A stretch of 64,000 bases of DNA from Pristiophorus japonicus (GCF_044704955.1 NC_091997.1:85684001-85748000), one strand, 5' to 3'; positions 6,024 through 63,845 are shown, numbered from the stretch's first letter. Numbers and translations are program-made. The notes: generated by a model from the sequence alone, not told the origin.

Positions 6024-6112
6024 GTAAGTCGTGGCAATCTTTCAGTATCTTTCATTATCTGTCCCCACATGGAAGTGAAACCCATCAAACGCGATCTCCT
6101 CTTAATTTCTAG

Positions 6113-28388: not shown

Positions 28389-28443
28389 ATGGCGCTTGGT
28401 GCTCTGTTTGTGGGTCTTTTCCTTCTGTTCCAACATGTTGTAG
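28389..28443 (+). CDS. Receptor copy B exon 1, signal peptide (MALGALFVGLFLLFQHVVG)
   Basis: AAATGG Kozak context, hydrophobic core, G|gtaagg phase-1 donor matching exon 2. Confidence 0.8.
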
Positions 28444-29586
28444 GTAAGGATCCATACTTTCAACTAATCCTCAACATGTTTATCTGGAAATATCAGTTTC
28501 TATCTGTACCTGAACGCGGAAATATAAGGATTGAAGGATATCGATTGCCATCAGTGCTGCTTTCACGCGGATGTTTAATGTACTCATATGACAGTTGTTG
28601 CTGAGGCATTTTAACACGGTTTAATCATGGGTGGTCAGTTTAAAATTGGCACTAAGAGAGTGAGGAGACAGATTAGGAGAACATTTTTTACACAGAGGTT
28701 TGTTTTGCCACAGGCAGTGGTTGACGCAGAGACATTTTCATCTTTTGAAGGAAAACTGGAAAACATTTGAAGCAGAGGAAGATTTGGGGCTGTGGAGAGA
28801 GCGAGGCAATGGGTTTGCTCTGGCAAAGAGCCAGCACTGGCACGATGGGCCCAATTGCCTCCTTCTGTGCTGCAAACGTCTTTGGTTCAACTCCTGTCTT
28901 AAAACAGTGCAGGGATGAAATACAAGAACACTGCTGATCCTATCCCAATTTCCCTTACTGCAGAACCATATCTCACTCTAAGAATGAAATAGTGGAAGAT
29001 TTAGAAGAGTTAGAAGGATTTGCTGATGGGCTTTAATGGAGAGAGGGGGTGGGAAGTCCGTGCAGAGCATAAATGCGGCATGGAGCAGTTGGGCCGAATG
29101 GCCTGTTTCTGTGCCGAACATTCCATGTAATTCTGTGTAAGATTTTGTGCTCAGACTCGATCATTGGGAGCTCTGAAGTAACAATTATATTTGATGACTC
29201 AGCCGAGCCTCACACCATTAAAGGGTGGAGACCACACTGGGCGGGGCCCACGACACCACTCGGACCAGGGCTCGAAATCAACACCACTGGCAAAATGGAG
29301 CAGCTCAGAGCTTTCTGTACATTACAGACCGTCCATTCCGCGATTGTTCTGTAAGGAAAGGGGAACCGACACTGTGATTGGAGGGGGTGGGAGGGTTCCC
29401 AATCGAGACTGTCTATCCAGACTGTGTAAGGGGTGGGGGATGGTGACTCTATCCAGACTGTGTAATGGAGCATTTCTAACCTGACTCTGTGAAATTTTAG
29501 GAGTGGGGTGGGTAGAAACAGATTCCGTGTAATATGAGCAGTCTGCAGGCAGACTCTGTTCCTGAAATGATAATTGACGTCTCCCC

Positions 29587-30839
29587 GATCGGTCCAAATC
29601 AGCATGGATTTATGAAAGGGAAATCATGCTTGACAAATCTTCTAGAATTTTTTGAGGATGTAACTAGTAGAGTGGACAAGGGAGAACCAGTGGATGTGGT
29701 GTATTTGGACTTTCAAAAGGCTTTTGACAAGGTCCCACACAAGAGATTAGTGTGCAAAATTAAGGCACATGGGATTGGGGTAATGTATTAACGTGGTAGA
29801 GAACTGGTTGGCAGCCAGGATCAAAGAGTGGGAATAAACGGGTACTTTTCAGAATGGCAGGCAATGACTAGTGAGGTACCGCAAGGTTCAGTGCTGGGAC
29901 CCCAGCTATTTACAATATATATTAATGATTTGGACGAAGGAATTGAATGTAATATCTCCAAGTTTGCAGATGACACAGTGTGAGCTGCGAGGAGGATGCT
30001 AAGAGGCTGCAGGGTGACTTGGACAGGTTAGGTGAGTGGGCAAATGCATGGCAGATGCAGTATACCGTGGATAAGTGTGAGGTTATGCACTTTGGTGGCA
30101 AAAACAGGAAGGCAGATTATTATCTAAATGGTGACAGATTAGTAAAAGGGGAGGTGCAACGAGACCTGAGTGTCATGGTACATCAGTCAATGAAAGTAGG
30201 CATGCAGGTTCAGCAGACAGTAAAGAAAGCAAATGGCATGTTGGCCTTCATAGCGAGAGGATTTGAGTATAGGAGCAGGGAGGTCTTGCTGCAGTTGTAC
30301 AGGGCCTTAGTGAGACCACACCTTGAGTATTATGTGCAGTTTTGGTCTCCTAATCTGAGGAAGGACATTCTTGCTATTGAGGGAGTGCAGCGAAGGTTCA
30401 CCAGACTGATTCCCGGGATAGCAGGACTGGCATATGAAGAAAGACTGGATCGACTAGGCTTATATTCACTGGAATTTAGAAGAATGAGAGGGGATCTCAT
30501 GGAAGCATATAAAATTCTGACGGGATTGGACAGGTTAAATGCAGGAAGAATGTTCCCGATGTTGGGGAAGTCCAGAACCAGGGGTCACAGTCTAAGGATT
30601 AGGGGTAAGCCATCTAGGACTGAGATGAGGAGAATCTTTTTCACCCAGAGAATTGTGAATGTATGGAATTCTCTACCACAGAAAGTTGTTGAGTCCAGTT
30701 CGTTGGTTATATTCAAAAGGGAGTTAGATGTGGCCATTGCGGCTAAAGGGATCAGGACGTATAGAGAGAAGGCAGGAGTGGGGTACTGAGGTTGAATGAC
30801 CTACTCCTGCACTTATTTTCTATGTTTCTGTATTTCTAT
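29587..30839 (+). mobile_element. 5'-truncated CR1 in intron 1 of copy B
   Basis: RT remnants 29534..29791 and 29980..30789, TTCTATGT tail; absent at about 57600-57620 in unit 2. Confidence 0.93.
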
Positions 30840-31209
30840 CCTCAGTCTAAACATGGCTGATGTCTGAGTTACAACCGAGTCTGACGGAGATGTGGTTTGG
30901 TGTTTGTTCGAGCTCTGGTGCAATAATGATCTATAGTATAGACACATCTGGGTCAGTGAGTGGAGAGTTTCTAGGTGCAGTCTGTCAGGGCCATTACAGG
31001 GGGGGATTGCGTGTATCAGATGCTCAAGTTGTAAACACAAATCCCTATCAGCCGCTCCATGATACCCAACCAATCAGAGCTCTGCTAACTTCTCCATCGC
31101 AGCTTATCATCTTAACCAGCAGGAAATGAGCTTCTGAACACAATGCAAGCAGAAATTATCGTTCTGACAATCTAGATGTGCTGATCAGAAATCTGTTCAT
31201 TACAAGAAA

Positions 31210-31525
31210 AAAAGAAAGTCTTGCATTTCTATAGCACCTTCTACAACCTCACAATGTCCCAAAGCTATTTAAAGCCAATGAAGTACTTCTGAAGTGCAAT
31301 CTCTGTTGATATGTAGAAAATGCGACAGCCCATTTTCACACAGCTAGGTCCCACAAACAGTAAAGTCTCATGTAAAAAAAACACACCTCTGACAGTATAG
31401 CACTCCCTCAGCACTGCACTGGGTGGTCGGCCTAGATTTTGTGCTCAAGTCTCTGGAGTGGGACTTGAACCCACAACCTTCTGACATCAGAAGCGACAGT
31501 GCTACCCACTGAACCACAGTTGACA
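31210..31525 (-). mobile_element. tRNA-derived SINE (internally deleted Deu-type)
   Basis: Minus-strand B-box-like GGTTCAAGTCCC near 31460-31471; 3' tail shared with the other SINE copies. Confidence 0.7.
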
Positions 31526-31869
31526 TCATGACAACAAGAACTGGAACTCATAGAGAGCGCTTAAAGTGGGGCAGGGCCTTGTGGTGTTTTGCAAATGTGG
31601 AAGTGCGGGGAAGGACGTGAGCTCGAGGTAGGAGAAGAGTGAGTGGAAGTGGCAAAAGGCTCGGTTGGAGAGGTAAGTTTTAAAGAACCTTTTGCAGATG
31701 CCAAAGATGTGCCAAGGTGGAGGGTGAGGGGTTAAGGGAGAGAATAGCAGAGTGTGGGGCATAAAGGCTGAGGGCTGAGCAAGTGGTGAAGGTTAAGGTT
31801 TCTTAAATCAATGCAGTGGGCCACAGAGGAGGCCAAAGTCAGATGAGGCCATGGAAGGATTGGTATTTA

Positions 31870-33410
31870 TTTTTTTAAACCTTGGATGTGGTCGTCACTG
31901 GAAATGTCAGCATTTAGTCTCTAGTTTTCCTTGAGAAGGTGGTAGTGACCCTTCCTCTTGAACCGTTAAGTCCGTGTGGTGAACACTTTCCACAATGCTG
32001 GTAGCGAGGGAGTTTCAGGATTTTCATCCAGCGACGATGAAGGAACAGCATTATACTTACAAGTCAGGATGGTGTGTCACTTGGAGAACTTGTAGGTGAT
32101 CATGCTCCCAAGCGTCTGCTGCCCTCGTTCTTCTATGTGGTAGAAGTCGTGGGTTTAGGAGGTGCTGTCGAAGAAGTCTTGGCAAGTTACTGCAGAGCAT
32201 CTTGTAGATGGTACACACTGCAGCCATGTTGCGCCGGTGGTGGAGGGAGTGAATGCTGAAGGTGGTGGATGGGGTGCCAAAATGTGATCCTGTTTATCCT
32301 GGATGGTGTGGAGTTTCTTGAGTGTTGTCGCAGCTGCACTCACCCAGGCAAGTGGAGAGTGTTGTAGGGCGCTTTCAAGGCAAAGGCACCTGCTGAATAT
32401 ATGTATGTATGTGTAAAATTGTAGCCAGATATAAAATGGCTGCCCGGGATTCCGCAAAGCCCGAGGGGAATTCAGCTAACCAGTTTGACTAACTTTCTGG
32501 GTAGCTGATGACACTGCATTTCCTTGTACAGGAACACTGGAAAGGGAGAGCTCAGCAGATGTCCCGAATCAACAAACCTCAGACAAGATGTCCTAGCAGA
32601 ATATTGAACAAAGGGATTCCTGTAACTGTGTTAAGATAAGGAGGTTAGGCACAGAACCCAAGGACAATAAAGATAAGGAGGTCTGAAGAATATCACGAGG
32701 GCATGAGTAAGTTCCAGCTAAACATGAGATGATCATGCAGGCCCCTGGTGTCTGGGGGACCAATTCTATTGGCCCAGAGGAATCGATTTGTAATCTATAA
32801 TCCTTATGATTGGATTGTGTCCAGCCGACATAGGCTGCGTAATTGTAATGAACTGGTATAAAACATATAAATACTGATGAATTTCTTTGTTCAGCAGTGA
32901 GTAGTGCCTGGAGTAACCCAGAGGTTTTCTCCCCGCCGACGTAATAAAAACCGTTTTGATGATGGAACCGACTCAGAGTGACGAGTGATTCTTCCAGGAT
33001 TTCATTCGCGCTAACAGAGAGTATTCCATCACACTCCTGACTTGTGCCTTGTAGGTGATGGAGAGAGTTTGGGGAGTCAGGAGGTGAGACACTCACCGCA
33101 GAATACCCAGCCTCTGACCACAGTATTTATGTAGCTGGTCCAGTTTTATTTTTGACCGATGATGACCCCTGACCATCCCTCCCTCAGATGTTGATGGTGG
33201 AGGATTTGATGATGTAATGCCGTTGAATGTCAGGAAATGGTTAGACCCTTTCTTGTTGGAGATTGTCATTGCCTGGGACTTGTTGTGAATGGAGCTGAAC
33301 ACTGTGCAATCATCAGCGAACATTCACACTTCTGACCTTATGATGGAGGGAGGGTCATTGATGAAGCAGTTGAAGATGGTTGGGCCCAGGACATTGCCTT
33401 GAGGAAGCGT
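31870..33410 (-). mobile_element. Degraded LINE 3' fragment, same family as 36990-39990, split by a solo LTR
   Basis: MFADDCTVF RT motif (33093..33323); reverse-complement similarity to 39110-39990. Confidence 0.8.
32360..33016 (+). mobile_element. Solo LTR, 657 bp
   Basis: TGTT...AACA termini, perfect TSD GAGAG (32355-32359, 33017-33021), TATAAAA 32857-32863, AATAAA 32943-32948; host LINE rejoins across it. Confidence 0.85.
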
Positions 33411-33419
33411 CCTAGGAGG

Positions 33420-34120
33420 GTAAAGAGCAGTTTTTAACTCAATGCCTTAGGGGGAGGTCAGTGAGGACAGGAGGGGTTGGTGAGTAGGATGCCATACGGG
33501 ACAGGATGAAACCGATGAAGAAAGGATTGTAGATATCCATGTTCATGGAGATGAAATTGTGGAGGAGAGTTCTAGTGGCACTGAGAATGAGATAGGAATG
33601 GAAGCAGCAATCTTTGGGAGGTGAGTCATGACATCTGGTGGAGGGCTAGATGTGGGTTTGAGGTACAGCTCAGGGTCAAATAGGTATAGTGGAGCTGAAG
33701 GGAATGGCTTTGCTTTTTCTGGGGAAAGGCCTGGTCTGTCTCGAACCTGATGCCAGCTAAGAAATCGGACAGTACAGCACTGAGGACATTGATGGAGAGG
33801 TGAAGTGAGGTATCGACTTGGCTACGTATGGAAGCTGACTCCTTGATAATGTTCCTGAGAAATAGCATGTATATGTGGAATATAGGAGAGGACCAAGGAT
33901 GGAGCCTTGGGTGGACATGGGGCGACCATTGCACACGGGAGGAGAACAATTCCTGAGGATGTGAGAAAGATAGGAGTGGATGTATTTAACAGCAGTGCCA
34001 CAAAGGTGGGCCATTGGAGAACCATTGGAGAAGGTTCACTGTGTCAAGGGCCTTTAAGCTGTTGAGGAAGATAAGGAAGGATAATACACTATGGTTGTAA
34101 ACACACAGGATATTGTTGTT
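33420..34120 (-). mobile_element. Highly degraded L2-like RT fragment
   Basis: QGSILGPLL (33757..34014) and LKALDTVN (33986..34249) remnants of RT motifs. Confidence 0.55.
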
Positions 34121-34133
34121 AATTTTGATAAGG

Positions 34134-35116
34134 ATGCGCTTATTTGTACTGCAAAAATGGCCAACATGTTCCACCTTTTGTTTCTGATTGGTCCCCTTGG
34201 AGAATAAGCCACACCCTGAAGTTTCACAGGAATGTGTAACTGGAACCACCTATCCCAAGGTCTCACTGACTTTGCAAATTGTAACTCGATCCACTTTGAC
34301 TTCCTGAAGTGACAGAGGTCAGAGCTCCAAAGAAGATAGCAAGGGCCAACCAAAGTACCTTGCCCCAGTCCAAGTACATCCCTCCCCCAGCCGAAGGGTC
34401 TTACCCTAGTCCAAGTGCATGCCTCCCCCAGCCGAAGTGCCTTACCCTAGTCCAAGTGCATGCCTCCCCCAGCCAAAGTGCCTTGTCCCAGCGCAAGTAC
34501 ATCCACTCCCTTCCGCCCTATCCTCCCACACCATAGATGGGGCAGGGATTGTGTACGGATTGGTAACAGGTTTATTGGCTGTGAAGTGAATAGTGACAGT
34601 GTGGTGACTTCTGGATATCATTCACTCCAACGATGTCCCTTGTAGGGGGTTGGAAGAACATGATCTGTCTTCCTTCCAATCATGTCTCTCCCCACAACTG
34701 CTCTCTCTCCCCACAGTCTCTCTCTCTCTCTACCCCCAATCTCTCTCTCTCTCTCTCTTCCCTCAATTTCTCTCTCCTCCCAGTCTCGCTCACTTTCCCG
34801 CTCCCCCCAGCCCCTCTCACCACCACCGCCCCAGTCTCTTTCTCCCCCTCCCCCCAGTCTCACTCTGCCTCTCGCTATCGCCCCCCGCCAGCTGCTCTCG
34901 GGCCCACGCTGGTCGGAGGGAGGGTGGGCGGGTTCGGTGCCTCAGGTCCTGCGTCACGGCACCACATGGATGGAATGATTTAGGCGGGGAGGGGGCAGAG
35001 CTTGACAGGGGCGGGGCTTGTCACCTGTCAGTCAAAAAAGTGCAGTATAGTCATGGGGGGCGGGGCTTGACAGACGCCTGTCTGTCAAAAAAAGTACAGT
35101 ACAAATAGTTACATCG
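34134..35116 (-). mobile_element. Second, shorter copy of the subterminal-inverted-repeat element
   Basis: Reverse-complement homology to both arms of 9813-12471; flanking direct repeat TTTTGATAAGG (34123-34133, 35117-35127). Confidence 0.7.
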
Positions 35117-35389
35117 TTTTGATAAGGCTGGTCTTGCTGATCAGTGTCATTCAAACCATACACATTGTCAACAAGCGTTAATGAAACAATTTGGAAGCTG
35201 TAAATTGACATCAAGTGGATACGCTAATTTACAGACTGTGGCAAAGAATTCTATGAAAGGAACAATAAACTGGCCTATTACCAAGCCATTGTGCAGAGCA
35301 TAATTTCCTATGAGAGGCTTTGTTTCACGTTGACTGTTTAATGAGCTTTCCTGTCTCTATCTCTATCCCATTCTGCCCTTTCCCCGCAG

Positions 35390-35782
35390 GATCCACTTAT
35401 CTCTTCTTCCTAAGACCAGGAGATGTCACCACTCTGCAATGCAACGTGCCCACCGGTGCTGGGAATAAAGTAACCTTGTGCAACTCCAGTGATCCCGGGT
35501 CAGAAATGGGTAAAATAAAATGTAAGAACGAAAAGCCATGTTATGAAAATATCGGTCCTCAGGGGAAAAAAGGACACAGTGAGCCAGAGTGTACAAAATG
35601 CAAATTAAATGACCATGAAACGGAGTCTCTGACATTCGCTGTGAAGACGATTAACTCGATGGTGTTTACCTGCATGGCTCAAGATTCCACAGAAGGAGGG
35701 GCATTGGAGTGTCCGTCCTGGCTCACACTGTCACAGCCGGGATGTGAAAACCACGACTTGTTCTTTGTGATAACCCAGGATG
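35390..35782 (+). CDS. Receptor copy B exon 2, atypical Cys-rich Ig-like domain D1
   Basis: Strong pyrimidine tract and cgcag acceptor, G|gtaggt donor, 393 nt, phase 1-1; PGDVTTLQC and VFTC resemble Ig B and F strands, 77 codons apart. Confidence 0.85.
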
Positions 35783-36166
35783 GTAGGTGCACTGGGGCAA
35801 TATCGCGGGAGGGATCGGGGCAGGTATTGGGGGAGGGATTGTTGTGGGAACATTAGGGGTAATTTAAGGTAAGGTATTAGGCGAGATATTAGAGGAGATA
35901 TTAGAGAGACGTTGGGGAGATATTAGAAGAGGTTTTCGGGCAGATAGCTGTCATTGCCTTCATTAAGATGAAATTACCTTGTGTGTAGATAAAGAGTAAT
36001 AGTGAGAAGTAGCTGGCACGGGTTTCAAACTGTCCAGGAGGTAAGAGACATGGTAGGTGGGGGAATGCGGTGGATGCAGTGTACATGGACATTAGGAAAT
36101 CCTTCGACTAAGTATCACATTGGAGATTATTATATTAACAAATATTCTTTTCAATGTTGTTTATAG

Positions 36167-36643
36167 ATTCAACTGATATATTTTTGATTAAAGAAAATTT
36201 GTCGCTGACAGTGTCAGAGGGAGAGAATGTGACTTTACCCTGCCAGTTTGAGAATATAAAACCACTCCCCTTCACTCTGTTTTGGTTCAGATCTGGAAAC
36301 GTCAACAAGTGTCTGCACTCTGTTCACACTGAGGATCATGCTGCACATTCTAACACACGTTGCTGTGTGGATAGAGAGTCATCACAAAGAATCTCTACCC
36401 AAAGCTCACACAATCCTTTGGTTAGCCGCCAGTCTCACAACCTTACTATTCACTCAGCGGGCCTGGTGGACACTGGGAGGTATCTCTGTGCTGTACACAG
36501 TCAGGATTCAGGGAAACCTGTCTGGAAGATTGCAGCAAACATCTCCCTTGTGACAGAGCCCAGTGCAGAAACTTCAGACACTCCCACCTCAACATCTGGA
36601 ATATCCTCAGAGAGCAGCAGCATAACTTGTACAAATACTCAAA
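36167..36643 (+). CDS. Receptor copy B exon 3, V-set Ig domain D2 plus S/T stalk
   Basis: EGENVTLPC, LFWFR, LTIHSAGLVDTGRYLC; ttatag acceptor, A|gtaagt donor, 477 nt, phase 1-1. Confidence 0.93.
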
Positions 36644-36847
36644 GTAAGTGATGCAATCTAAAACATAATGTGAACCATTTAATATCAATAATTCAAGGTG
36701 TGAGATTCCAGGTCCATTGTCCAGTTTGTACCCTTTAGAAGTTACTTTGATTTCCTTCCTTTGCCATTGCACTATTCTAGATTGTAACCAGAAAAGTATG
36801 TTCCTCAGCCCAGGTAACCAGTGTAATGAGCAGCAGGAAATCTTCAG

Positions 36848-36913
36848 ACACTCCCACCTCAACATCTGGAATATCCTCAGTGACCGGAAGCATTACTCCT
36901 ACAAATATACAAA
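36848..36913 (+). CDS. Possible optional 66-nt stalk exon (TPTSTSGISSVTGSITPTNIQ)
   Basis: Duplicate of the 3' end of exon 3 including the gtaagt donor; in frame from a weak ttcag acceptor. Confidence 0.35.
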
Positions 36914-36989
36914 GTAAGTGATACAATCTAGAGCATGATGTGAACCATTTTATATCAATAATTCAATATAAATAATATAAGTAATTCTT

Positions 36990-38070
36990 TCACACAATGT
37001 CCCAGACTCCTCCATCACCTTCCCAGGGTATGTCCGGTCCCACCGGCAGGACAGACCCACCAGAGGTGGCGGCACAGTGGTATACAGTTGGGAGATAGTG
37101 GTCCTGGGAGTCATAGAAACATAGAAACATAGAAAATAGGTGCAGGAGTAGGCCATTCGGCCCTTCAAGCCTGCACCGCCATTCAATGAGTTCATGGCTG
37201 AACATGAAACTTCAGTACCCCATTCCTGCTTTCTCGCCATACCCCTTGATCCCCCGAGTAGTAAGGACTACATCTAACTCCTTTTTGAATATATTTAGTG
37301 AATTGGCCTCAACAACTTTCTGTGGTAGAGAATTCCACGGGTTCACCACTCTCTGGGTGAAGAAGTTTCTCCTCATCTCGGTCCTAAATGGCTTACCCCT
37401 TATCCTTAGACTGTGACCCTTGGTTCTGGACTTCCCCAACATTGGGAACATTCTTCCTGCATCTAACCTGTCTAAACCCATCAGAATTTTAAACGTTTCT
37501 ATGAGATCCCCTCTCATTCTTCTGAACTCCTCAACATTGACTCCCTAACATCGTAAAGTCTCATGGCATCAGGTCAAACATGGGCAAGGAAACCTCCTGC
37601 TGATTACCACCAACCGCCCTCCCTCAGTTGATAAATCAGTACTCCTCCATGTTGAACAGCACTTGGAAGAAGCACTGAGTGGTTCGGTAGCACCACTACT
37701 GACCGACCTAGCCTCGTCCTGAAGGACATCCTTGCCAGACTGGGCCTATGGCAGATGGTGAAAGAACCAACATGAGGGAAAAACATACATGACCACATCC
37801 TCACCAATCTACCTGTCACAGATGCATCTGTCCATGACAGTATTGGAAAGAGTGACCACTGCACAGTCCTTGTGGAGACAAAGTCCCATCTTCACACTAA
37901 GGACACCCCTGCATCATGTTGTGTGGGTCTACCACTGTACTAAATGGGATCTCAGTGTCAGTATTCTATGGACAAATACGTAAGCTGCTCCAAGATTAAT
38001 GTGCTCATCTAAACTGCGATCTCTGAAAACCAGGGAGGTCCTGAGGGAGGGAGGGAAGGGGTCAGTAGGA

Positions 38071-38107
<37 letters not shown>

Positions 38108-39990
38108 AGGCCTGTGCAGCAGAGCCTAGTCTCCAATCATCTTGGGTCCCCTTGCCATTGGACCAAGACCCAGCTCTGTCAAGTCTGTGTGGTGGCTGGT
38201 GTGCAACGGCCACCCCATATTAAAAGGATTTATGGTGCATAGGCATCTTCCACCCTTTAAAATGAAGTTCGAGATCTGGCCCGCATTAGTCTCATCAGTC
38301 ACCTTAGAACTCATTTTAGTGTGGAAGCAAGTCATGCTCAACTCCGGGGCACTGCCTAAGAAGAGAGAAGAAGAAATGGGATAGATTCAGAAAAGACCTT
38401 GCAGATAAAACTGGGCATTCATGAGGGCCATCATCAGCAGCAGAATTGTATTCCACAACAATCTGTGACCTCATGTCCCGGCATATCCCTCACTCTACCA
38501 TTACAATTAAGCCAGGGGACCAACCCTGGTTCAATGAAGCGTGTAAAAGAGCATGCCAGGAGCAGCACCAAGCACACCTAAAAATGAGGTGCCAACCTGC
38601 TGTAGCTACACTACATGCATGCTAAACAGCACATGCAGCATGCTATAGGCAGAGTGAAGCGATTCCACAACCAACGGATCAGATCAAAGCTCTGCAGTCC
38701 TGCCACATGCAGTCATGAATGGTGGTGGACAATTAAACAACTAAGGGGAAGAGGCTCCATGAACATCCCCATCCTCCATGATGGCAAAGCCAGCACGTGA
38801 GTGCAAAAGACAAGCAGAAGTGTTTGCAACCATCTTCAGCCAGAAGTGGTGTGCGGATGATTCATCTCGGCCTCCTCCGGAGGTCCCCAATATCACAGAA
38901 AACAGTCTTCAGCCAATTTGATTCACTCCATGTCATATCAAGAAATAGCTGACGCACTGGATACGGCAAAGTCTATGGGCCCCGACAGTATCCCGACTGC
39001 AGTGCTGAAGACTTTTGTCCCACAACTTACCCTGCCTCTATCCAAGCTGTTCCATTAAAGCTACATCACTGGCGTCTACCCAACAAAGTGGAGAATTGCC
39101 CAGGTATGTATGTTCATGATTGCAGTCTTCTGTTCCATTTGCAACCCCTCAGATAATAAAGCAGTCCATGTCTGTATGCAGCAAGACCTGGACAACATTC
39201 AGACTTTGACTGATAAGTGGCAAGTAACATTTGCGCAACACAAGTGCCAGGGAATGACCATCTCCAACAAGAGAGAGTCTAACCACCTTCACTTGATATT
39301 CAACGGCATTACCTTCACTGAATCCCCACCATCAACTTCCTAGGGGTCAGCATTGACCAGAAACTTAACTGGACCAGTCACATAATTGCTGTGGCTAGAA
39401 GAGCAGGTCAGAGGCTGGGTATTCTGCGGCGAGTGTCTCACCTCCTGACTCCCCAAAGTCTTTCCACCATCTACAAGGCACAAGTCAGGAGTGTGATGGA
39501 ATGATGAGTTGAGCTCCAACAATTTGATGCTCGACACCATCAGGATTAAGGAGCCTGCTTGATTTGCATTCCAACCACATGTTAAACGTTCACTCCCTCC
39601 ACAACCAGCGTACCGTGGCTGCAGTGTGTACCATCCACGATGCACTGCAGCAACTCACCAAGGCTTCTTCGGCAGCACCTCCCAAACCCGTGACCTCCAC
39701 CATGTAGAAGATCAAGGGCAGTAGAATGGATTGTGACTTGGAGAGGAACATCCTCATCTCCAAGTTCCCCTCAGTCACACACCATCCTGACTTGTAAATA
39801 TATCACTGATCTTTTATCGTCGCTGGTCAAAATCTTGGAACTCCCTCTCTAACAGCACTGTGGGAGTACCTTCATCACGTGGACTGCAGCGGTTCAAGAA
39901 GGTGGCTCACCACCACCTTCTCACGGGCAATAAGAGATGGGCAATAAATTTTGGCCTTGTCAATGATGCCCACATCCCATGACTGAATAC
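36990..39990 (+). mobile_element. Degraded LINE (endonuclease-RT remnants) with nested insertions and (TG)n at 38072-38105
   Basis: QQDLDNIQ...WQVTFAQHKCQ (39110..39343); SDH-like AGTGACCAC at 37851. Confidence 0.75.
37113..37529 (-). mobile_element. Short 3' fragment of the young CR1 family
   Basis: ORF 37212..37517 matches the CR1 ORF2 C-terminus; same tail as 142-4137. Confidence 0.95.
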
Positions 39991-40197
39991 AACAGAAATT
40001 AAGCGAGAGATTCAAGAGCAATTGTCCACTTTGTACCCATTAGACGTTGGTTCGATTTTCTTCCTTCGCAATTGCACTTTTCCAGATTGTAACAGAAAAG
40101 TATCTTCCTCGGCCCAGGTAACCAGTGTGATCAGCTGTACATATAAGACGGCATTGCACAAACTGAACTTAATGTTGCTTCTCCTATGCATTTCCAG

Positions 40198-40317
40198 ACC
40201 CTGCCATCACTGTGAACGTAGCCATAGTGTGTCTGATTGTACTCATTTGCATTGTTGGGATAGTTTGCATTATTGGGGTAGTTTGCCGAAGGAAACGACA
40301 ATCTGTCAAAGGTAAAG
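40198..40317 (+). CDS. Receptor copy B transmembrane exon
   Basis: tttccag acceptor; phase-1 frame gives PAITVNVAIVCLIVLICIVGIVCIIGVVC-RRKRQSVKGK; donor aag|gtaagc (alternative in-phase donor after 40311). Confidence 0.9.
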
Positions 40318-40427
40318 GTAAGCAAGAGCGTTAAAATGTTTGATCTAAATCTATAAAATTGTAAGAGCAGATTCCTTACATAGATTCTTACATTTATCTT
40401 TCCCATCTTACGGCATGTGTTGTGAAG

Positions 40428-40449
40428 GATCCTCAGCACCAGGACCCAG
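40428..40449 (+). CDS. Receptor copy B 22-nt micro-exon (GSSAPGP)
   Basis: gaag acceptor, cag|gtaggg donor; supplies the phase 1 to 2 shift needed to read the next exon without a stop. Confidence 0.65.
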
Positions 40450-40546
40450 GTAGGGATGGGATTTGATCAGTATTTCGGCAGACTTTCTGTATAATTTTGC
40501 TCATTTAATGGAACATTTACAGGTTACTTTTCTTTGCTAACTGTAG

Positions 40547-40581
40547 GGCCGGTGATGTGCAGCTGACACAAGTGGCTGAAT
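40547..40581 (+). CDS. Receptor copy B 35-nt exon (RAGDVQLTQVAE)
   Basis: ctgtag acceptor, T|gtaagt donor; only the phase 2-1 frame is open. Confidence 0.7.
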
Positions 40582-40675
40582 GTAAGTGACTAGAATTGCT
40601 GGCCAGCTCTTCCGATCCTGGCCCTTTGAGAGTTGAAACTAAAAGCACACATGGTGTTCCCGCCCTTCTGTCCAG

Positions 40676-40862
40676 GTTTCCCGTACTCTGTGGTTCCCAG
40701 GAAGGATCAGAGCGATGACAACGAGCCTGTTGCGTACTCGGTGACAAGAGTTCCAACGCCGTCGAGCCAGCCAAGGCCTGGTGAAGGAATGGAGAGCACT
40801 GGCCCAAACATTGACTCTACAGAGCATGTGTACTGTTTGATCGAGGAGTCAATGGTCAAAGG
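40676..40862 (+). CDS. Receptor copy B cytoplasmic exon with FPYSVV, VAYSVT, HVYCLI
   Basis: tgtccag acceptor, GG|gtaagc donor, 187 nt, phase 1-2; lies within ORF 40633..40866. Confidence 0.85.
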
Positions 40863-42224
40863 GTAAGCAGAGTGACAGCTGTCACCCCTCGGCTACGGTC
40901 AACACTGACCACAACTTTGTTTCAGGATGGAGGGTTAGAAGATCGTTAATGTAATGAAGGTGAGGGGAGCCCATGCTGGCAAATGGGTTACTTTTCCACT
41001 TTGGCCACACAGTATCACTTGGAGCACTCCAGATTAGGCACAGCGTAAAACTCCCTCTGGACTGTCCCAACAATGTTCCTCAACTCCAAGGTCAGGAGAG
41101 AGGTCAGACATCTTCACTTCTCACACCTCATGTCCTGTTTGAGTGGAAGGGCCAATTTAGAGGTAGTTTTGTACTGTGGCTCACATGAGCTGCAAACTGG
41201 ATCGAGATGACCAAATTAATTTCATCAAGGACCATGAGAGAAAATGTGAGAGAAAGAAAGAGACAGAGAAAGACAGAGACAGAGACAGACAGTGATAGGT
41301 TCAGACAGAGACTGCGACAGAGACAGACAGACAGTGATAGATTCAGATAGAGACTGACCTGATATTGGAATAAAGGAGCACTATCAGAAAAGCATCACAG
41401 TGCCCTTATGAAGTTATCTTTTTTTTTTAAACTCTCTCAGGACAATATTTTGGCATATGTGACCATAGTGATCAATTTCGTCCAAATATTTTACTGAATG
41501 ATTGGCAGTTTTAGGCAAGGAATTGGATTGAGGCTGAACACTCTTTGCAGAGAGGACAGCTTACATAGCAGACTCAGAGAGATAAAGAGAGATATGGAGA
41601 CAGTAACAGAGACACAGAGAGACAGAGAGAGACAGAGAGAGACAGACAGAGAGCAACACAAAGAGAGAAAGAGAAAGAGAGACAGTGTTTTGGATCGATA
41701 ATAATAGACCCAGGTTCGGGATCTGGGTGAATGTTAAATAATAGATAAGACAAATGAAGTAAAGAATTAAATACTGTTTACTGAGGGAAAAGAAATATTA
41801 ATAAAAAAGTTTACGAAGAAAAGAGAAGTATGATAAGATGCAACAACGCTGACGGCCTTCGGCCTGTCGGGAACTCTGCAACGACGGCTGGTCTGGAGCC
41901 TTGGGGGTCCCGGCACCGCTCGCGAATCGCGGTCCAAGGTGAAGTTCGAAGAGCTAAGGGACAGTGCCGCTCCTTTATACTATTAAACAAAACATGGGTG
42001 CATGTGGCTTATGGCCAACTCCTAATCTGTAACACCCCAGCTGCTTGTCCACAAAGCATGAGATCTCGAGGCGCCGACAGTCTCATAATAAGCTGGTGTG
42101 CATCTCAAGATCGCTTCCCTCTCTCTCTCTCTATAGCAACAACAATCCACGAAGCATGGAGCAGAAACACACTGTAAATGACTAAATATCATAATTAACT
42201 TTATGTGATTAACCCTCTACAATC

Positions 42225-43360
42225 GAGACGGAGATAGACAGTGAGACGGGGATCGAATAACAGACAGAGAGCGAGAAACAGAGACAGAGAGAGANNNNNN
42301 NNNNNNNNNNNNNNNNNNNNNNNNNNNNNNNNNNNNNNNNNNNNNNNNNNNNNNNNNNNNNNNNNNNNNNNNNNNNNNNNNNNNNNNNNNNNNNNNNNNN
42401 NNNNNNNNNNNNNNNNNNNNNNNNNNNNNNNNNNNNNNNNNNNNNNNNNNNNNNNNNNNNNNNNNNNNNNNNNNNNNNNNNNNNNNNNNNNNNNNNNNNN
42501 NNNNNNNNNNNNNNNNNNNNNNNNNNNNNNNNNNNNNNNNNNNNNNGACAGAGACAGGCAGAGAGACAGCGAGAGAGAGAGAGAGAGAGAGAGAGTCAGC
42601 GAGACAGGAAGAGAGAGACAGAGACAGGCAGCGAGNNNNNNNNNNNNNNNNNNNNNNNNNNNNNNNNNNNNNNNNNNNNNNNNNNNNNNNNNNNNNNNNN
42701 NNNNNNNNNNNNNNNNNNNNNNNNNNNNNNNNNNNNNNNNNNNNNNNNNNNNNNNNNNNNNNNNNNNNNNNNNNNNNNNNNNNNNNNNNNNNNNNNNNNN
42801 NNNNNNNNNNNNNNNNNNNNNNNNNNNNNNNNNNNNNNNNNNNNNNNNNGCATAGAGAGAGACAGGGAGAGACGGTGATAGGCAGAGAGAGAGAGACAGA
42901 AAGAGAGAGACGGAGACAGATAGAAACAGCGAGAAAGAGAGAGAGACAGGCAAAGAGAGACAGAGACACAGAGAGACTCAGAGCGAGAGAGAGAAAGAGG
43001 CAGGCAGAGCGAGACAGAGAGAGAGACAGGGAGAGAGACCGAGAGAGAGAGATAGATGGAGAGAAAGAGAAAGAAACAGAGAGAAAGAGAATCGGTGAGA
43101 CAATCCGAGAGTCAGAGAGTGACAGACAGAGTAACAGACAGAGAGTGACAGACAGAGAATGACAGACAGAGTGACAGACAGAGAGTGACAGACAGAGAGT
43201 GACAGACAGAGTGACAGACAGAGAGTGACAGACAGAGAGTGACAGTCAGAGAGTGACAGACAGAGAGTGACAGACAGAGAGTGACAGACAGAGTGACAGT
43301 CAGAGAGTGACAGTCAGAGAGTGACAGACAGAGAGTGACAGACAGAGAGTGACAGACAGA
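42225..43360. repeat. GA/GACA microsatellite with N runs (42295-42546, 42636-42849)
   Basis: Paralog of 4830-5830. Confidence 0.95.
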
Positions 43361-43518
43361 ATCAGGGAAAATGAATGAGGGAATTTCAGGCTGGGTTAGA
43401 CTGAAATCCAGGCCAGTGGGGAGAAAGTGACTGAATGTAGTTTCCACTTACAGCTGTTTAATATTGTTTGAATCATATGTTACTCATTTTTCACACATTT
43501 AATTTTCTGTTTTCCCAG

Positions 43519-43553
43519 TGATGACGGCAAAACTGAAATCCAGGCAGTAAAAT
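43519..43553 (+). CDS. Receptor copy B 35-nt exon (GDDGKTEIQAVK)
   Basis: Long pyrimidine tract and cccag acceptor, T|gtaagt donor, phase 2-1. Confidence 0.8.
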
Positions 43554-43626
43554 GTAAGTCGTGGCAATCTTTCAGTATCTTTCATTATCTGTCCCCACAT
43601 GGAAGTGAAACCCTCTTAATTTCTAG

Positions 43627-43892
43627 GCAGTGACCGCACGGACCATGTACCGCAGGTTGAAACCTCTTTAGCCATTGAACTCAAACCAGACGGCCAATCG
43701 CAGCCCAAAGAGGACAGTAAGGAGGATCCCGTTGCTCTGTCTAATGAGCAGACTTATTCTTTGATAGGTTGCCCGGGGACAGGGAGCCCAGGAGACACGG
43801 AGACAAGGTCTTGGCTGGAGGAAGATGATCCACAACCTGGCCCGTTAGAGATGGAAGAAAATCCTATTTATGCTAAAATAGAGGAAGCCTGA
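43627..43892 (+). CDS. Receptor copy B terminal coding exon (QTYSLI, ENPIYAKIEEA*)
   Basis: ttctag acceptor; 266 nt open to TGA at 43890-43892. The nine exons sum to 1590 nt (529 aa plus stop). Confidence 0.82.
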
Positions 43893-44915: not shown

Positions 44916-44921
44916 AATAAA
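44916..44921 (+). terminator. Candidate poly(A) signal of copy B
   Basis: AATAAA followed by a G-rich tract. Confidence 0.5.
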
Positions 44922-56511: not shown

Positions 56512-56566
56512 ATGGCGCTTGGTGCTCTGTTTGTGGGTCTTTTCCTTCTGTTCCAACATGTTGTAG
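56512..56566 (+). CDS. Receptor copy C exon 1, signal peptide
   Basis: Identical to 28389-28443, G|gtaagg donor. Confidence 0.8.
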
Positions 56567-58617
56567 GTAAGGATCCATACTTTCAACTAATCTTCAACAT
56601 GTTTATCTGGAAATATCAGTTTCTATCTGTACCTGAACGCAGAAATATAAGGATTGAAGGATATCGATTGCCATCAGTGCTGCTTTCACGCGGATGTTTA
56701 ATGTACTCATATGACAGTTGTTGCTGGGTCATTTTAACACGGTTTAATCATGGGTGGTCAGTTTAAAATTGGCACTAAGAGAGTGAGGAGACAGATTAGG
56801 AGAACATTTTTTACACAGAGGTTTGTTTTGCCACAGGGAGTGGTTGACGCAGAGACATTTTCATCTTTTGAAGGAAAACTGGAAAACATTTGAAGCAGAG
56901 GAAGATTTGGGGCTGTGGGGAGAGCGAGGCAATGGGTTTGCTCTGGCAAAGAGCCAGCACTGGCACGATGGGCCCAATTGCCTCCTTCTGTGCTGCAAAC
57001 GTCTTTGGTTCAACTCCTGTCTTAAAACAGTGCAGGGATGAAATACAAGAACAGTGCTGATCCTATCCCAATTTCCCTTACAACAGAATCATATCTCACT
57101 CTAGGAATGAAATAGTGGAAGATTTAGAAGAGTTAGAAGGATTTGCTGATGGGCTTTAATGGAGAGAGGGGGTGGGAAGTCCGTGCAGAGCATAAATGCG
57201 GCATGGAGCAGTTGGGCCGAATGGCCTGTTTCTGTGCCGAACATTCCATGTAATTCTGTGTAAGATTTTATGCTCAGACTCGATCATTGGGAACTCGAAA
57301 GTAACAATTATATTTGATGACTCAGCCGAGCCTCACACCATTAAAGGGTGGAGACCACACTAGGCGGGGCCCACGACACCACTCGGACCAGGGCTCGAAA
57401 TCAGCACCACTGGCAAAATGGAGCAGCTCAGGGCTTTCTGTACATTACAGACCGTCCATTCCGCGATTGTTCTGTAAGGAAATGGAAACCGACACTGTGT
57501 AAAGGGGGATTTGTAACCATACTCTGCAATTTGTTTCTAAACAGACTCTGTGTAATATGGGCGGTCTGCCGACAGATTCTGTTCCTCAAATGATAAGTGA
57601 CGTCTGCCCCTAACCTCAGTCCAAACACGGCTGAGTTACAACCGAGTCTGACTGGGAGATGTGGTTTGGTGTTTATTCGAGCTCTGGCGTAATAGTGATC
57701 TATAGTACAGACACACCTGGGTCAGTGGGGCCAAGTTTCAGTTGAGTTGCTCCTGTTTTTTTGGAGCAACTAGTTTAGAATGGAATATCTTAGAAATTTG
57801 AATTCTCGGCATTTAGTTTGTTCCAGTTCTAGTCAGTTAGAACAGTTTCACTTTGGAACAGAATTTTTTTTTCAAAAGGGGGCGTGTCCGGCCATTACGC
57901 CTGTTTTTAAAGTTTAGGCAGTGAAAACTTACTCCAAACTAACTTAGAATGGAGTAATTGAAGATTTTTGTACGTTCGAAAAAACCTTGTCTACACTTTA
58001 GAAAATCAGGCGTAGGTTACAAATTCGGCGTAGGGAACGAGGGCGGGGGGGGAGACGGGGGGGGAAGGGAAGTCATTAAATTCTACAATCAATCCTTCAG
58101 CCATGAACTCATTGAATGGCAGTGCAGGCTAGAAGGGCCGAATGGCCTACTCCTGCACCTATTTCCTATGTTTCTATGTTAGTTATACTTATACAAATAT
58201 TATACCAATAAATCCAACCTGAATAAAAATTTATAAGCAAAGAAAAGATTAAATAATCCATGTTCCGACCTGTGTGAAACAGCAGCAACCTTCAGGCAGG
58301 CCTTTCATGTTGGAGACAGGCAGGGGTGGTGTCAGTGTCTCGACGGCAGCCCCCACAGCAGCAACAAGCAGCCTTCGAGCTGAGCTGTGGTGCTTCAGGC
58401 AGGCCTACATTCCATTAGTGGCTGGCCGGCAGCCGAAGAATCAACACGCACGCAGCTTTCGAAGGGGGTTGAGGCCATTCGGCCACACGATAGGGGCGGC
58501 GTCAGTGGCTCGACGGCAGCCGAAGATACAGCAGCAGCTTTCGAGCTGTGAGGGGACTGAGGCCATTTGGCCAGGGAGAGGCAGCCACATAGACAGTTTT
58601 ATACTTAAATTTGCAGA

Positions 58618-59817
58618 ATGGGTGCTGCATTGTCAACACCACGTATTATGCAATGGTTTGCCATCAATTCACTGCATAGGAGAGAATTGATTAGAGCTCA
58701 CTGCACCAGGAACATCGTAACCCGTAGGTTGCTGGGCAGGAGATCTTACCCACGTCAACAATATCGAGCCAGGCGCTCGTACCTGGACATGAGCGAGGCT
58801 GATTGTGTGAAAAGGCTGCGTTCACTGAGATCTGTGATATGGTGAGAGCAGATTTGCAGCCCAAAAGCAGACTGCCAACTGCCCTGTCTGTTGCAGTGAA
58901 GGTAACAGCTGCACTTTCTTTCTATGCCTCGGGATCGTTTCAGGCTACAACTGGAGATGTGTGTGCCATCTCTCAACGTGCAATACATGCCTGCATTTAC
59001 CAGGTCACGGCTGCACTGTATGCGCGGAGGAATGACCATCAATTTCCCAATGACCGCACAAGCGATCCATGAGAGGGCTGTGGGCTTCTTCAGGATTGCT
59101 GGCTTCCCAAAGGTACAGGGCTGCATTGATTGTACCCACATAGCCTTGCGAGCACCTGTGGAGGATTCTGAGCAGTACCGAAATAGGAAAGGTTTCCACT
59201 CTATCAATGTGCAGCTCGTGTGTGACGACAAGCAGCGCATCATGTCAGTCGATGCGAGATACCCTGGCAGCACCCACGATGCGTTCATCCTACGCGACAG
59301 CGTTCTATCTGACATGTTTGAGCAGCAGCCAGAAGGGCAGAGCTGGCTACTGGGAGACAAAGGGTACGGCCTGACCATCTGGCTCATGACACCCCTACGC
59401 ATGATACGGACAGAAGCTGACCGTCAATACAACATGGCGCACATTGCGACACGCATCATCATTGAGAGATCCATTGGCATATTGAAACAGCGTTTCGGAT
59501 GCCTGGACCATTCCGGAGGACAGTTGCTATACTCTCCTCAGATTGTCGGTCACTTCACTGTTGTGTGCTGCATGCTTCATAACTTAGCCATCATGAGGCA
59601 GCAGGAGCTGGTAATGGAACCAGAAGACCCACGTGAGGGTCCAGTACCTGATGATAGTATTATGGAAGAGCAGGATGAGGATGATGACGACGATCAGGAA
59701 AGCATGCAAGTGCCTGATGCCGGAGCACGAGGTCGGAGGAGGGCTGTCCATCGTGCTCCTTTAACGATTGCTCGAGCCTTGTGCCAGCAGCTCATCCGTG
59801 AACGCTTCAACTACTGA
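58618..59817 (+). pseudogene. Harbinger (HARBI1-like) DDE transposase, frameshifted
   Basis: GCIDCTHI, NRKGFHSINVQLVCD, YPGSTHDAFI, LLGDKGY, IERSIGILKQRF, CCMLHN; N-terminus split over 58618..58845 and 58803..59072. Confidence 0.92.
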
Positions 59818-60299
59818 TGCCTGAGGGTTCTGTGACCACTTTTGCACATGGACATGTTTATTCTTTGCAGTTGTTCCGACGTTGTGTTGTGTTAATGGAA
59901 CATTTAATGGAAGTTTTAATGAAAAAATATTTTATTGAAAAGTTAACGTCACTGTAATAAAATATTTGTTGTATCAAACTATACTTTTTAATATGACTCT
60001 TGAAGATCACTTAAAAACTTTATGGTCACTTATAAACTTGTAAAGTTACAAAAGTTACAAAACAATCGCAATGTGAAAAATCTTACTCTTAAGATCACTT
60101 AAACTTCAAGATCACTTTTTAGATGCAAAATTAAATAAGTTACAGAATGTGAGAGCATTTACACTAAAAGATCACTTGAAAACCCTGAGATCACTTATAA
60201 ATTGTAAAATTACAAAACTTACAAAACAATTTCAATTTGAAAAACGCTACTACAGCTACATCAAGAACAAGAACAAAAGCAGCAAAGAAAGGCTGCATC

Positions 60300-61800
60300 C
60301 ATGTCTCATCCATATCTCAGTGAATGTTCACTTCCTCATAGGGGTGTCATTTGATTGGCCGGGCTGTGTGCCCTTATTGCAGCAGCTACCTCAACCAGGC
60401 CCTCCCTGACGGCCTGTGCCGTCATTTGCATGCCCCCCCGACGGCCTGTACTGTTGATTGCACTCTCTCGGACATTCCCTCCCTAAGTTCCCGTGCCATT
60501 ACTGCTTTTTCTCCTGTCAGGACCGACAACTCTTCACCCACTGCACTGACGCCACCGATGAGTGATCGGGTAAGCTCATTGGTCTCCATACCCAACGCCA
60601 CAACCTGAGCCGCATCTGTTGCATGCTGCATCTCAGGAGAGCGTGTCTCCAATCTCCTTCTCCTCTGCCTGGGTCTGCCTCGTGGCACCACTACACTGGG
60701 AGGCGCGGGCACGGACAGTGGGACGCTCTGTGTTGCAAGCGGCACCACTACACAGGGAGGCGCGGGCTGGGACTGTGGGACGCTCTGTGTTCCAGACGGC
60801 AGAACTAGAGGGAGAGACTCGGGTTGAAATGCTGGGATGCTCTGTGTTGCAGACGGCAGAACTAGAGGGAGAGGCTCGGGTTGGAATGCTGGAATGCTCT
60901 GTGTTGCAGACGGCAGAACTAGAGGGAGAGGCTCGGGCTGGAACGGTAGGACGCTCTGTGTTGCAGACGGCAGTACTAGAGAGAGAGGCTCGGGCTGGGA
61001 TGGTGGGGCGCTCGGTGTTCCAGACAACAGCACTCGAGTGCGAGCCATGGGCTGGGATGTTGGACGAATGAGTATAAACTGCTCCATGATATCAGCAGCA
61101 GCACTGGGACCCGCAGCGTCGGAATCAAAACCATAGTAGATGGAGCCAGAACCTATGCGAGAGGGAGGAGCAGGCTCGGACGGTAGTGCACTGACTGTAG
61201 AAAGCTGCATTATACCAGCAGCACCACTGGGACCCGCAACATCGGAAGCAAAACCATGGAAGGTGGAACCAAGACCTATGCTAGGGGTTGAAACTCTGAT
61301 GCCCCTTGATGGGGGCTCAAACATTAAATTGGAAGCTCTCCCCTGCAGACATTTCAGTCATCGCTGCCATCATCCAGTCTGGTTCATCCACATCTGGTTG
61401 ATCTGTATCTTCAGGATCCTCAGGGTTGGCAGCAGCAGCACCACCTTCATCATCATCATCATCATCAACATCATCATCATCATCATGTTCTGCAAAATAC
61501 ATCAGAACAGTCAAATGTTTAACAGCAAGGGAGGGGGCCGGATGGATGGCATGAGTACTCTCACACATAGCAGGTTAGGCAGCAGGTTGATTTAAAGGGC
61601 CACGATGCATTTTCAGGACTTACCCTCTTCCTCGTGTGCAGGCCCAGCTTGTGCTGTACTGATTGCTTTTCTCCATGTACCACTCATCATAGCAGCTACC
61701 CTCTGTTCCAAGGGTGTCAGTGGATGCAGATTGGGCATGCCTCCTCCTGTCCGAGTTGCCTCCCTTTTGTTGTGGGCCAATTTCTTCTGCAAAGAGTAAA
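60300..61800 (-). pseudogene. 3' part of the Harbinger accessory gene (Myb/SANT-type by position)
   Basis: Convergent ORFs 60422..61324 and 61317..61568 with acidic run, Pro/Ser repeats and coiled-coil-like end; the Myb domain itself is not seen. Confidence 0.6.
60690..61030 (-). repeat. 60-bp coding tandem repeat (about 5-6 copies)
   Basis: GCTCTGTGTTGCAGACGGCAGAACTAGAG recurs at about 60-bp spacing; encodes [19 protein letters not shown]-like units. Confidence 0.9.
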
Positions 61801-61861
61801 ATCTAACTTTTTACAGAGTGTGTCAGTCTGCAAGGTGGGACATACAGATCGCCAGGTTACA

Positions 61862-63443: not shown

Positions 63444-63845
63444 GATCCACTTATCTCTTCTTCCGAGGACCAGGAGATGTCACCACTCTGCAATGCAACG
63501 TGCCCACCGGTGCTGGGAATAATGTAACCTTGTGCAGCTCCAGTGATGCCGGGTCAGGAATGGGTGAAATAAAATGTCAGCACCCAAAGAACGAGAAGCC
63601 ATGTGATGAAAATATCGGTCCTCAGGGAAGAAAAGGATACAGTGAGCCAGAGTGTACAAAATGCAAATTACATGACGACCAAACAGAGTCTCTGACATTC
63701 GCTGTGAAGACGATTAACTCGATGGTGTTTACCTTCATGGCTCAGGATTCCACAGAAGGAGGGGCATTGGAGTGTCCGTCCTGGCTCACACTGTCACAGT
63801 CGGGATGTGAAAACCACGACTTGTTCTTTGTGATAACCCAGGATG
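63444..63845 (+). CDS. Receptor copy C exon 2, Cys-rich Ig-like D1 variant
   Basis: Same splice sites as copy B, 402 nt open frame, 15 replacements and a QHP insertion. Confidence 0.85.

Follow-up and report, generated by a model that had tools for sequence, protein, structure and literature searches.

A spliced gene within a tandem array of immunoglobulin-type receptors in the sawshark Pristiophorus japonicus, and its place in an unnamed receptor family of jawed vertebrates

Several families of immunoglobulin (Ig) receptors, including SIRP, PILR, CD300, NITR and DICP, consist of clustered, fast-changing genes in which similar ectodomains are carried either on long tails with tyrosine motifs or on short tails with a charged transmembrane (TM) segment, and in which members from the same species resemble one another. 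Known activating receptors couple through a TM Lys or Arg to DAP12, FcR-gamma or CD3-zeta. To our knowledge, the germline-encoded paired receptor families recognized in cartilaginous fish are few, and the innate immune receptors of these animals are poorly mapped. Here, a stretch of 64,000 nucleotides from P. japonicus (GCF_044704955.1, NC_091997.1:85684001-85748000; hereafter the window) was analyzed, in which an Ig-superfamily receptor gene, designated copy B, lies between the partial sister copies A (upstream) and C (downstream). The sawshark family is likewise clustered and fast-changing, but it differs from the paired Ig families in its arrangement of a Cys-rich domain (D1) followed by a V-set domain (D2), in the lack of canonical immunoreceptor tyrosine-based inhibitory, switch or activation motifs (ITIM, ITSM or ITAM), and in a charged TM residue that is Asp and not Lys or Arg. 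Copy B is a real, spliced gene, but it already stands in public databases as an unnamed automatic prediction and so is not a discovery. Within the broad class of paired Ig-like receptors, it is an uncharacterized member. As a complete member of a tandem array of type I receptors, it probably acts as a paired-type cell-surface signalling receptor, with a net effect that is most likely inhibitory or modulatory.

The original prediction had described copy B as nine exons with GT-AG borders and compatible phases, joined into a stop-free protein of 529 amino acids (aa), and all of these features were recovered (Table 1). Every internal border was preceded by AG and followed by GT (9/9 exons), the entry phases of exons 1-9 were 0,1,1,1,1,2,1,2,1, and the joined frame of 1590 nt contained a terminal stop only. 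The order within the protein also held: a hydrophobic leader, D1, D2, a Ser/Thr stalk, an uncharged TM segment followed by CRRKRQ, and a tail of 192 aa with five Tyr. The joint occurrence of these features goes well beyond what chance would give. The count of nine exons did not, since the retrieved isoforms use a tenth exon, 3b (acceptor gttcctcag, donor gtaagtga), which is a duplicate of the stalk-coding 3' part of exon 3. It was present in every retrieved isoform of the copy B gene (P0144, P0148 and P0154), and a near-identical unit was found in P0141. The full form of copy B therefore comprises ten exons and 564 aa once exon 3b is counted. Splicing exon 3 straight to exon 4 gives the single-stalk form of 529 aa, which keeps the reading frame and is similar to P0002 of Heptranchias, a single-stalk orthologue (533 aa); its direct junction (36643|40198) occurred in none of the retrieved isoforms. 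The exon 1 leader of copy B recurs in P0003 of Mustelus.

Table 1. Exons of copy B, partial sister copies and assembly gaps (positions in the window)
Feature	Position	Strand	Description
Exon 1	28389..28443	+	Start codon and signal peptide MALGALFVGLFLLFQHVV; donor GT; 100% to N-termini of P0144, P0148, P0142
Exon 2	35390..35782	+	D1, 130 aa, nine Cys, Cys-rich insertion; AG/GT; 100% to P0144, P0148, P0154
Exon 3	36167..36643	+	D2 V-set with two extra conserved Cys, and first Ser/Thr stalk unit; 100% to P0144, P0141
Exon 3b	36809..36913	+	Second Ser/Thr stalk unit, 35 aa, 105 nt; AG/GT, phase 1 to 1, stop-free
Exon 4	40198..40317	+	Stalk end, uncharged Cys-rich TM helix, stop-transfer CRRKRQS; identical in P0148, P0141
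Exon 5	40428..40449	+	22 nt, tail; joints 40317|40428 and 40449|40547 GT..AG in X7 and X5 contigs
Exon 6	40547..40581	+	35 nt, tail; joint 40581|40676 in contigs of all four runs
Exon 7	40676..40862	+	Tail motifs CFPYSVV, VAYSVT, EHVYCLI; 100% in seven public P. japonicus proteins
Exon 8	43519..43553	+	35 nt, tail; AG/GT; identical in P0148, P0154
Exon 9	43627..43892	+	QTYSLI, C-terminal EENPIYAKI (NPxY), stop; 100% to P0148, P0141
Copy A (upstream)	5990..6375	+	Exons 8-9 only, rest before the window; exon 8 (5990-6022) 100%, exon 9 97.7% aa to copy B (tblastn)
Copy C (downstream)	56512..63844	+	Exon 1 (56512-56565) 100%; exon 2/D1 63446-63844; window ends before exon 3
Assembly gaps	42295-42546, 42636-42849		Inside intron 7 (40863-43518), adjoining GA/CAGA-type microsatellite

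Read support was taken from Logan contigs of four runs from three organisms, covering the region 35200-41100. The spliced contigs showed GT..AG joints exactly at the exon 4/5, 5/6 and 6/7 borders, the last one in 4/4 runs. The donor at 35782 was joined in run X7 to 29 letters translating to the D2 start of the paralogue P0142 (ANISSIEENS), and in run X5 to the orthologous SDEIFSTEEIS; therefore, both a sister copy and another species make use of the exon 2/3 junction. The contig depth in run X7 was 135-690 over exons 2 and 3 (299-390 for exon 3) versus 6-25 over intron 2, and it was approximately 376 across 36776-36972, the region of exon 3b. Splicing in the contigs, together with a depth that is higher over exons than over the intron, suggests RNA as their source, the library type of the runs being unrecorded. 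The junctions put forward with the original prediction were thus seen in part, namely the three joints of exons 4-7 and the donor at 35782, while the direct joint 36643|40198 was absent among the joints listed, as were the two joints of exon 3b (36643|36809 and 36913|40198). Contigs of run X7 also crossed the exon 3 donor, where read-through would stop the protein two codons on.

Public proteins were collected by searching 1.84 billion representatives with D2 as the phmmer query and then looking up records. The P. japonicus entries named 'uncharacterized protein isoform X1-X5' (UniRef UPI00398...) matched the copy B exons at 100%, and the entries P0141, P0142, P0144, P0148, P0149, P0151, P0154 and P0157 were compared. 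Because identical RefSeq/UniRef predictions exist, the gene is not hidden, contrary to what had first been claimed. P0148 corresponded residue for residue to exons 1-2-3b-4-5-6-7-8-9 of copy B, whereas P0144 followed exons 1-2-3-3b-5-6-7-8 over 436 aa and then used an internal acceptor in exon 9 near 43767, which P0154 uses as well. D2 is skipped in P0148 and P0154, and the TM exon 4 is skipped in P0144, which may represent a soluble form that retains the 'cytoplasmic' sequence. The locus thus supplies a well-supported ten-exon gene model together with predicted isoforms that lack D2 or the TM exon.

D2 scored above the gathering threshold of the Pfam V-set family (PF07686; 32.9 bits versus 26, E 7.9e-8), and its residues C25, W39, D101, Y105 and C107 were invariant in 41 aligned sequences. 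The predicted model of D2 (predicted local distance difference test score, pLDDT, 84) gave its best fold matches, at approximately E 1e-6, with T-cell receptor (TCR) V-alpha/gamma, PILR-alpha, Nav-beta4, nectin-1, CD96 and PD-1, and the V domain of sialoadhesin was also matched. D2 is a V-set Ig domain with two additional conserved Cys. For D1, there was no Pfam match and no sequence match in the PDB at E up to 10, and the ESM Atlas returned only weak and mixed leads. Its AlphaFold2 model (pLDDT 75) contained eight strands, and the fold matches of this model were all Ig domains: VIA gave Z 8.3 for a Dscam Ig domain and Z 7-8 for VNAR and TCR V domains, and the best Foldseek match had an E of 1.8e-3, with scores at background level. 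On the strength of the predicted model, the most fitting description of D1 is a derived Ig-like domain carrying a Cys-rich insertion. The Cys of the B and F strands are both present in D1 of copy B (VFTCMA); in copy C (P0157), P0142 and P0151, the F-strand Cys is replaced by Phe (VFTFMA). Therefore, D1 either can do without its canonical disulfide or has other Cys that take its place. The core Trp of D1 is absent in the sawshark and present in Heptranchias and bony vertebrates. Across the family alignments, four Cys are conserved in each of D1 and D2.

The D2 search retrieved 27 proteins at E up to 1e-10 in which D2 lies at about residues 140-290, after a D1. Shark homologues with the plan leader-D1-D2-TM-tail were found in Heptranchias, Mustelus, Rhincodon, Carcharodon, Cetorhinus, Scyliorhinus, Heterodontus, Hemiscyllium and Chiloscyllium, and the same plan was seen in sturgeon, gar, salmonids, clupeids, eels, lungfish, frog, newt, turtles, crocodilians, lizards, kiwi, duck and echidna. 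From these similarities, copy B belongs to an unnamed Ig-receptor family that extends across jawed vertebrates. The suggestion of a chondrichthyan family, made in the original prediction, was therefore too narrow, since both the D1-D2 plan and the membrane-proximal tail motif C-x-P-Y-A/S-V recur from sturgeon to echidna. Its other statement, that the gene could not be assigned to CD300/TREM, SIRP, CD200R or NITR, agrees with the records: the homologues are all 'uncharacterized' or 'hypothetical' except for evidently automatic or mistaken names (PD-L1, CHRNA7, LRRC40, 'serine-rich adhesin' and 'putative GPI-anchored protein pfl2'). No marsupial or placental member occurred among the 30 of 129 matches that were looked up, which is no proof of loss. 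No papers were found under the LOC identifiers of six homologues, and a keyword search for shark paired Ig receptors gave nothing relevant. The family is thus defined by clear hallmarks from sharks to monotremes, with no name and no literature found. Two further matches, P0016 and P0041, were rejected as members; the former is pIgR-like without the family hallmarks, and the latter is a C2-repeat protein from a cyprinid.

No sequence relation between this family and the paired Ig families was found beyond generic V-set similarity, and the domain order sets it apart from SIRP, CD200R and NITR. In SIRP and CD200R, the V domain is membrane-distal and is followed by a C1 or C2 domain, whereas here the V-set domain is membrane-proximal and D1 has no C-type match. 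CD200R is similar in that it too has two Ig-like domains and an ITIM-less tail with an NPxY; it differs in that its domains are V plus C2 in place of an atypical D1, and in that the NPIY of the present family is conserved only among sharks. In NITR, a membrane-distal V domain with a J-like motif precedes an I domain that has six conserved Cys (bioRxiv 10.1101/2021.06.11.448072). The sawshark family instead has an atypical D1 before a V-set D2, four conserved Cys, and no FGxG J motif. With respect to CD300/TREM/pIgR, the pIgR domains matched D2 only at E 0.005, which is weaker than TCR V-alpha and SIRP. Against the PDB, the family profile aligned with the whole V domain of VISTA (VSIR) at E of about 2e-6; further likenesses to VISTA, PD-1 and PD-L1 are a His-rich stretch in D2 and an additional Cys following its C strand, and one lizard homologue is automatically named PD-L1. 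However, VISTA differs in its tail and in having only one domain, and TCR V-alpha ties with it at about E 2e-6. Therefore, no family can be assigned from the profile search.

The DICPs require separate consideration. They have D1 and D2 domain types with four conserved Cys each, occur as D1-D2 and D1a-D2a-D1b-D2b, are clustered, and comprise inhibitory, activating (charged TM) and secreted forms (bioRxiv 10.1101/2021.06.11.448072). The present family could be of the DICP kind, as it also has four conserved Cys per domain and includes a D1-D2-D1-D2 protein in Heptranchias (P0001). We consider this improbable; the comparison was made with DICPs as described in publication. None of the retrieved homologues is named DICP, and none comes from zebrafish or from another named DICP gene, the sole cyprinid match being the rejected C2-repeat protein P0041. 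A single gar locus (LOC107076895) was retrieved here, in contrast to the multigene DICP clusters of gar and bowfin (bioRxiv 10.1101/2021.06.11.448072). Activating DICPs carry a TM Arg (bioRxiv 10.1101/2021.06.11.448072) in place of the Asp seen in this family, and D1 here is 130 aa long with a Cys-rich insertion.

The shark proteins fall into two tail types. Those with long tails share the TM sequence ..LICIVGVICIIRRKRQ and the Tyr motifs C[LF]PYSV, VAY[AS]VT, EHVYCLI, [TA]YSLI and NPIY[AS]; those with short tails share ..LVLYLVxLICIDGxxCIIRR and end in a tail of 18-39 residues without Tyr. The TM segments differ at the charged position, the short forms having LICIDG (Asp) and the long forms LICIVG (Val). 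Short forms with Asp were found in Pristiophorus (P0151), Heptranchias, Scyliorhinus torazame and Heterodontus, and the short form of Mustelus carries Asn. P0151 is 84-90% identical to copy B in D1-D2, and four other sharks likewise have long/short pairs. Near-identical ectodomains are thus placed on long- and short-tail paralogues, as in paired activating/inhibitory Ig receptors. Paralogues with a charged TM residue, which the original prediction had proposed as something to look for, therefore exist in several sharks, though the charge is Asp instead of Lys/Arg and the 64-kb window contains no short-form TM exon. From their distribution, the two shark tail types are old. The first tail motif is kept as C-x-P-Y-A/S-V from shark to echidna, and NPIY is conserved only in sharks. 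The Heptranchias perlo protein P0001 (683 aa) combines D1-D2-D1-D2 with the short-tail Asp TM and bears the automatic name 'serine-rich adhesin for platelets-like'; either it is a genuine member with four domains, or the prediction has run on across two tandem genes.

In the protein, the membrane-distal D1 and D2 are followed by one or two Ser/Thr stalk units of the O-glycosylation type, chosen by splicing. On the preferred reading of copy B as a paired-type signalling receptor, the two domains would bind a varying ligand. The long-tail form, represented by copy B, would be phosphorylated on its tail Tyr and recruit SH2 or PTB proteins; phosphotyrosine-dependent recruitment of a negative regulator is favoured, and endocytic sorting may be an alternative or additional role. 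The SH2 domain of Csk prefers pY-[T/A/S]-x-[M/I/V], as in the YSSV site of PAG, and we presume that the C-x-P-Y-S/A-V site resembles this preference. Similarly, the NPxY of CD200R binds Dok adaptors, and the C-terminal NPIY of sharks is taken by us to resemble that site. The short-tail Asp forms may oppose the long form through a partner protein; the TM Asp would imply coupling to a partner with a basic TM residue. The family-wide Tyr site and the Asp-bearing short forms of sharks thus raise the questions of which proteins bind the tail, which partner the Asp pairs with, and which ligand D1 and D2 recognize. If expression proves to be leukocyte-specific, the family would be added to the comparative picture of paired receptors.

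Several observations weigh against a paired immune receptor. None of the five Tyr motifs of copy B (FPYSVV, VAYSVT, HVYCLI, QTYSLI and PIYAKI; 0/5) fits the ITIM pattern [SIVL]xYxx[IVL] or the ITSM pattern TxYxx[VI], and there is no ITAM; therefore, an inhibitory function is not shown. The charged TM residue of the short forms is Asp and not the Lys/Arg expected for coupling to DAP12, FcR-gamma or CD3-zeta. The label 'immune' is drawn from architecture and gene dynamics alone, and an RNA origin of the Logan contigs, given their unrecorded library type, is not proven. The few non-shark species with more than one retrieved entry show mostly one or two loci (three in Sardina), and such a low copy number would be unlike classical multigene innate receptor families. 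Finally, the dN/dS of 0.8 between the D1 exons of copies B and C (described below) comes from 20 substitutions, so that relaxed and diversifying selection are indistinguishable. The tails of the tetrapod homologues end in TVYEVV or TVYALL, which match the canonical pattern.

The same tail could belong to a mucin-like adhesion or endocytic receptor without an immune role, in which the Ig domains make contact with other cells or with the matrix, the glycosylated stalk serves as a spacer, and the YxxPhi and NPxY motifs direct internalization and sorting through AP-2 or PTB proteins. Four of the five tail Tyr of copy B are in YxxPhi motifs and the last is in NPxY, which, with the lack of canonical ITIM, ITSM and ITAM, suits such a role. 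The same can be said of the variation in stalk length by splicing, of the presence of nectin-1, CD96, Nav-beta4 and sialoadhesin beside immune V domains among the fold matches of D2, and of the one or two loci retrieved per species in most bony vertebrates. This explanation was nevertheless judged unlikely, as tandem expansion, a fast-changing ectodomain on a near-identical tail, species-wise clusters and long/short partners with a charged TM are the usual marks of paired immune receptors, and the conservation of the first Tyr motif from shark to echidna suggests a specific docking site. A broader proposal than the paired-receptor reading of copy B is that a family as old as the jawed vertebrates was expanded in sharks into paired receptors with non-ITIM Tyr tails (C-x-P-Y-S/A-V conserved for more than 400 million years, and NPxY) and TM-Asp partners, and would form a new innate immune receptor system of cartilaginous fish. 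We advance it tentatively and regard it as somewhat doubtful.

The tandem amplification in at least three copies that had been predicted was also observed, as the window holds a complete copy B together with the 3' end of copy A and exons 1-2 of copy C, and at least five paralogue proteins are recorded. Exon 9 of copy A was 100% identical to the public protein P0142, and D1 of copy C was 86.5% identical in aa to that of copy B, 3 aa longer owing to a 9-nt indel, and 100% identical to the public protein P0157. The copies sit in duplicated blocks of 94-98% identity; for example, block 4138-9533 matches 41530-47029 at 96-98%. The repeat period is 37.5 kb from A to B and 28.1 kb from B to C. This difference is due to two LINE (long interspersed nuclear element) insertions, an expanded 22-mer array and approximately 2.1 kb of extra sequence of an LTR (long terminal repeat) element. 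In intron 1, copies B and C have only the first 0.9 kb and the last 90 bp in common.

The gaps in intron 7 lie clear of every exon, and no part of the reading frame spans them. The corresponding site of copy A is also gapped (4903-5398), beside the same (AGAGAGACAGACAG)n repeat, and A and B have collinear flanks. Continuity of the scaffold across the intron 7 gaps is plausible, although not proven; a misjoin at this point would mean that exons 8-9 belong to a sister copy that is 98-100% identical. The assembly gaps in two copies and the identity of 94-98% between copies might suggest collapsed or duplicated haplotypes, or a decaying pseudogene. Such an artefact is highly improbable. The copies differ by transposon insertions of 2-3 kb, in intron 1 and by the 9-nt indel in D1. 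Public records contain at least five distinct D1 sequences or paralogue proteins of P. japonicus, and at least two D1 variants were present among the contigs of a single run. In addition, the frame is open over ten exons, and the tail is conserved with that of other sharks.

The ectodomain and the tail of the copies have diverged to different extents. Between copies A and B, identity was 87% in D1 and 79% in D2, versus 97% in the TM exon, 100% in exon 7 and 98% in exon 9. In a maximum-likelihood tree of the ectodomain, the paralogues clustered by species with 100/100 support. The species-wise clusters of the ectodomain, together with the old tail types, mean that the ectodomain exons have undergone either gene conversion or repeated recent duplication. 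For D1 of copies B and C, dN (non-synonymous divergence) was 0.051 and dS (synonymous divergence) was 0.062, giving a dN/dS of approximately 0.8 from 15 non-synonymous and 5 synonymous changes. Both values exceed the divergence of the neighbouring non-coding sequence (2%), and a mosaic history with gene conversion fits this excess as well as selection does.

Several long open reading frames (ORFs) lie between the copies. They were rejected as further genes of the array, as they are remnants of LINEs, LTR retroelements and a DDE transposase. Copies of a LINE-type element with ORFs for reverse transcriptase (RT) and EEP endonuclease, 86-96% identical to one another, were located at 141-3146 (minus strand), 13300-15690, 21036-23011, 29587-30798 (inverted) and 37114-37530, the last being a fragment in intron 3 with an enormous contig depth in the runs. 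Of the additional length in the A-B spacer, approximately 4.4 kb comes from two of the LINE copies. Remnants of LTR-retroelement pol genes (RT, RNase H and integrase) were found at 16863-20088 and 48306-51933 on the minus strand and at 24215-28133 on the plus strand. The plus-strand element stops approximately 250 bp short of the copy B start codon, and approximately 2.1 kb of it is absent upstream of copy C. A G/A-rich array of about 73 units of a 22-mer occupies 10365-11943 in the A-B spacer, and the homologous site in the B-C spacer (47033-47270) contains 11 units of a different 21-mer. Intron 1 of copy C contains a 57-nt tandem repeat of 6.5 units (60700-61066) inside a minus-strand ORF of 300 aa without a Pfam match. 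The same intron also carries an intact-looking ORF for a 297-aa DDE_Tnp_4 transposase of the Harbinger/PIF type (58924-59814, plus strand; Pfam E 2.7e-36), which is absent from intron 1 of copy B.

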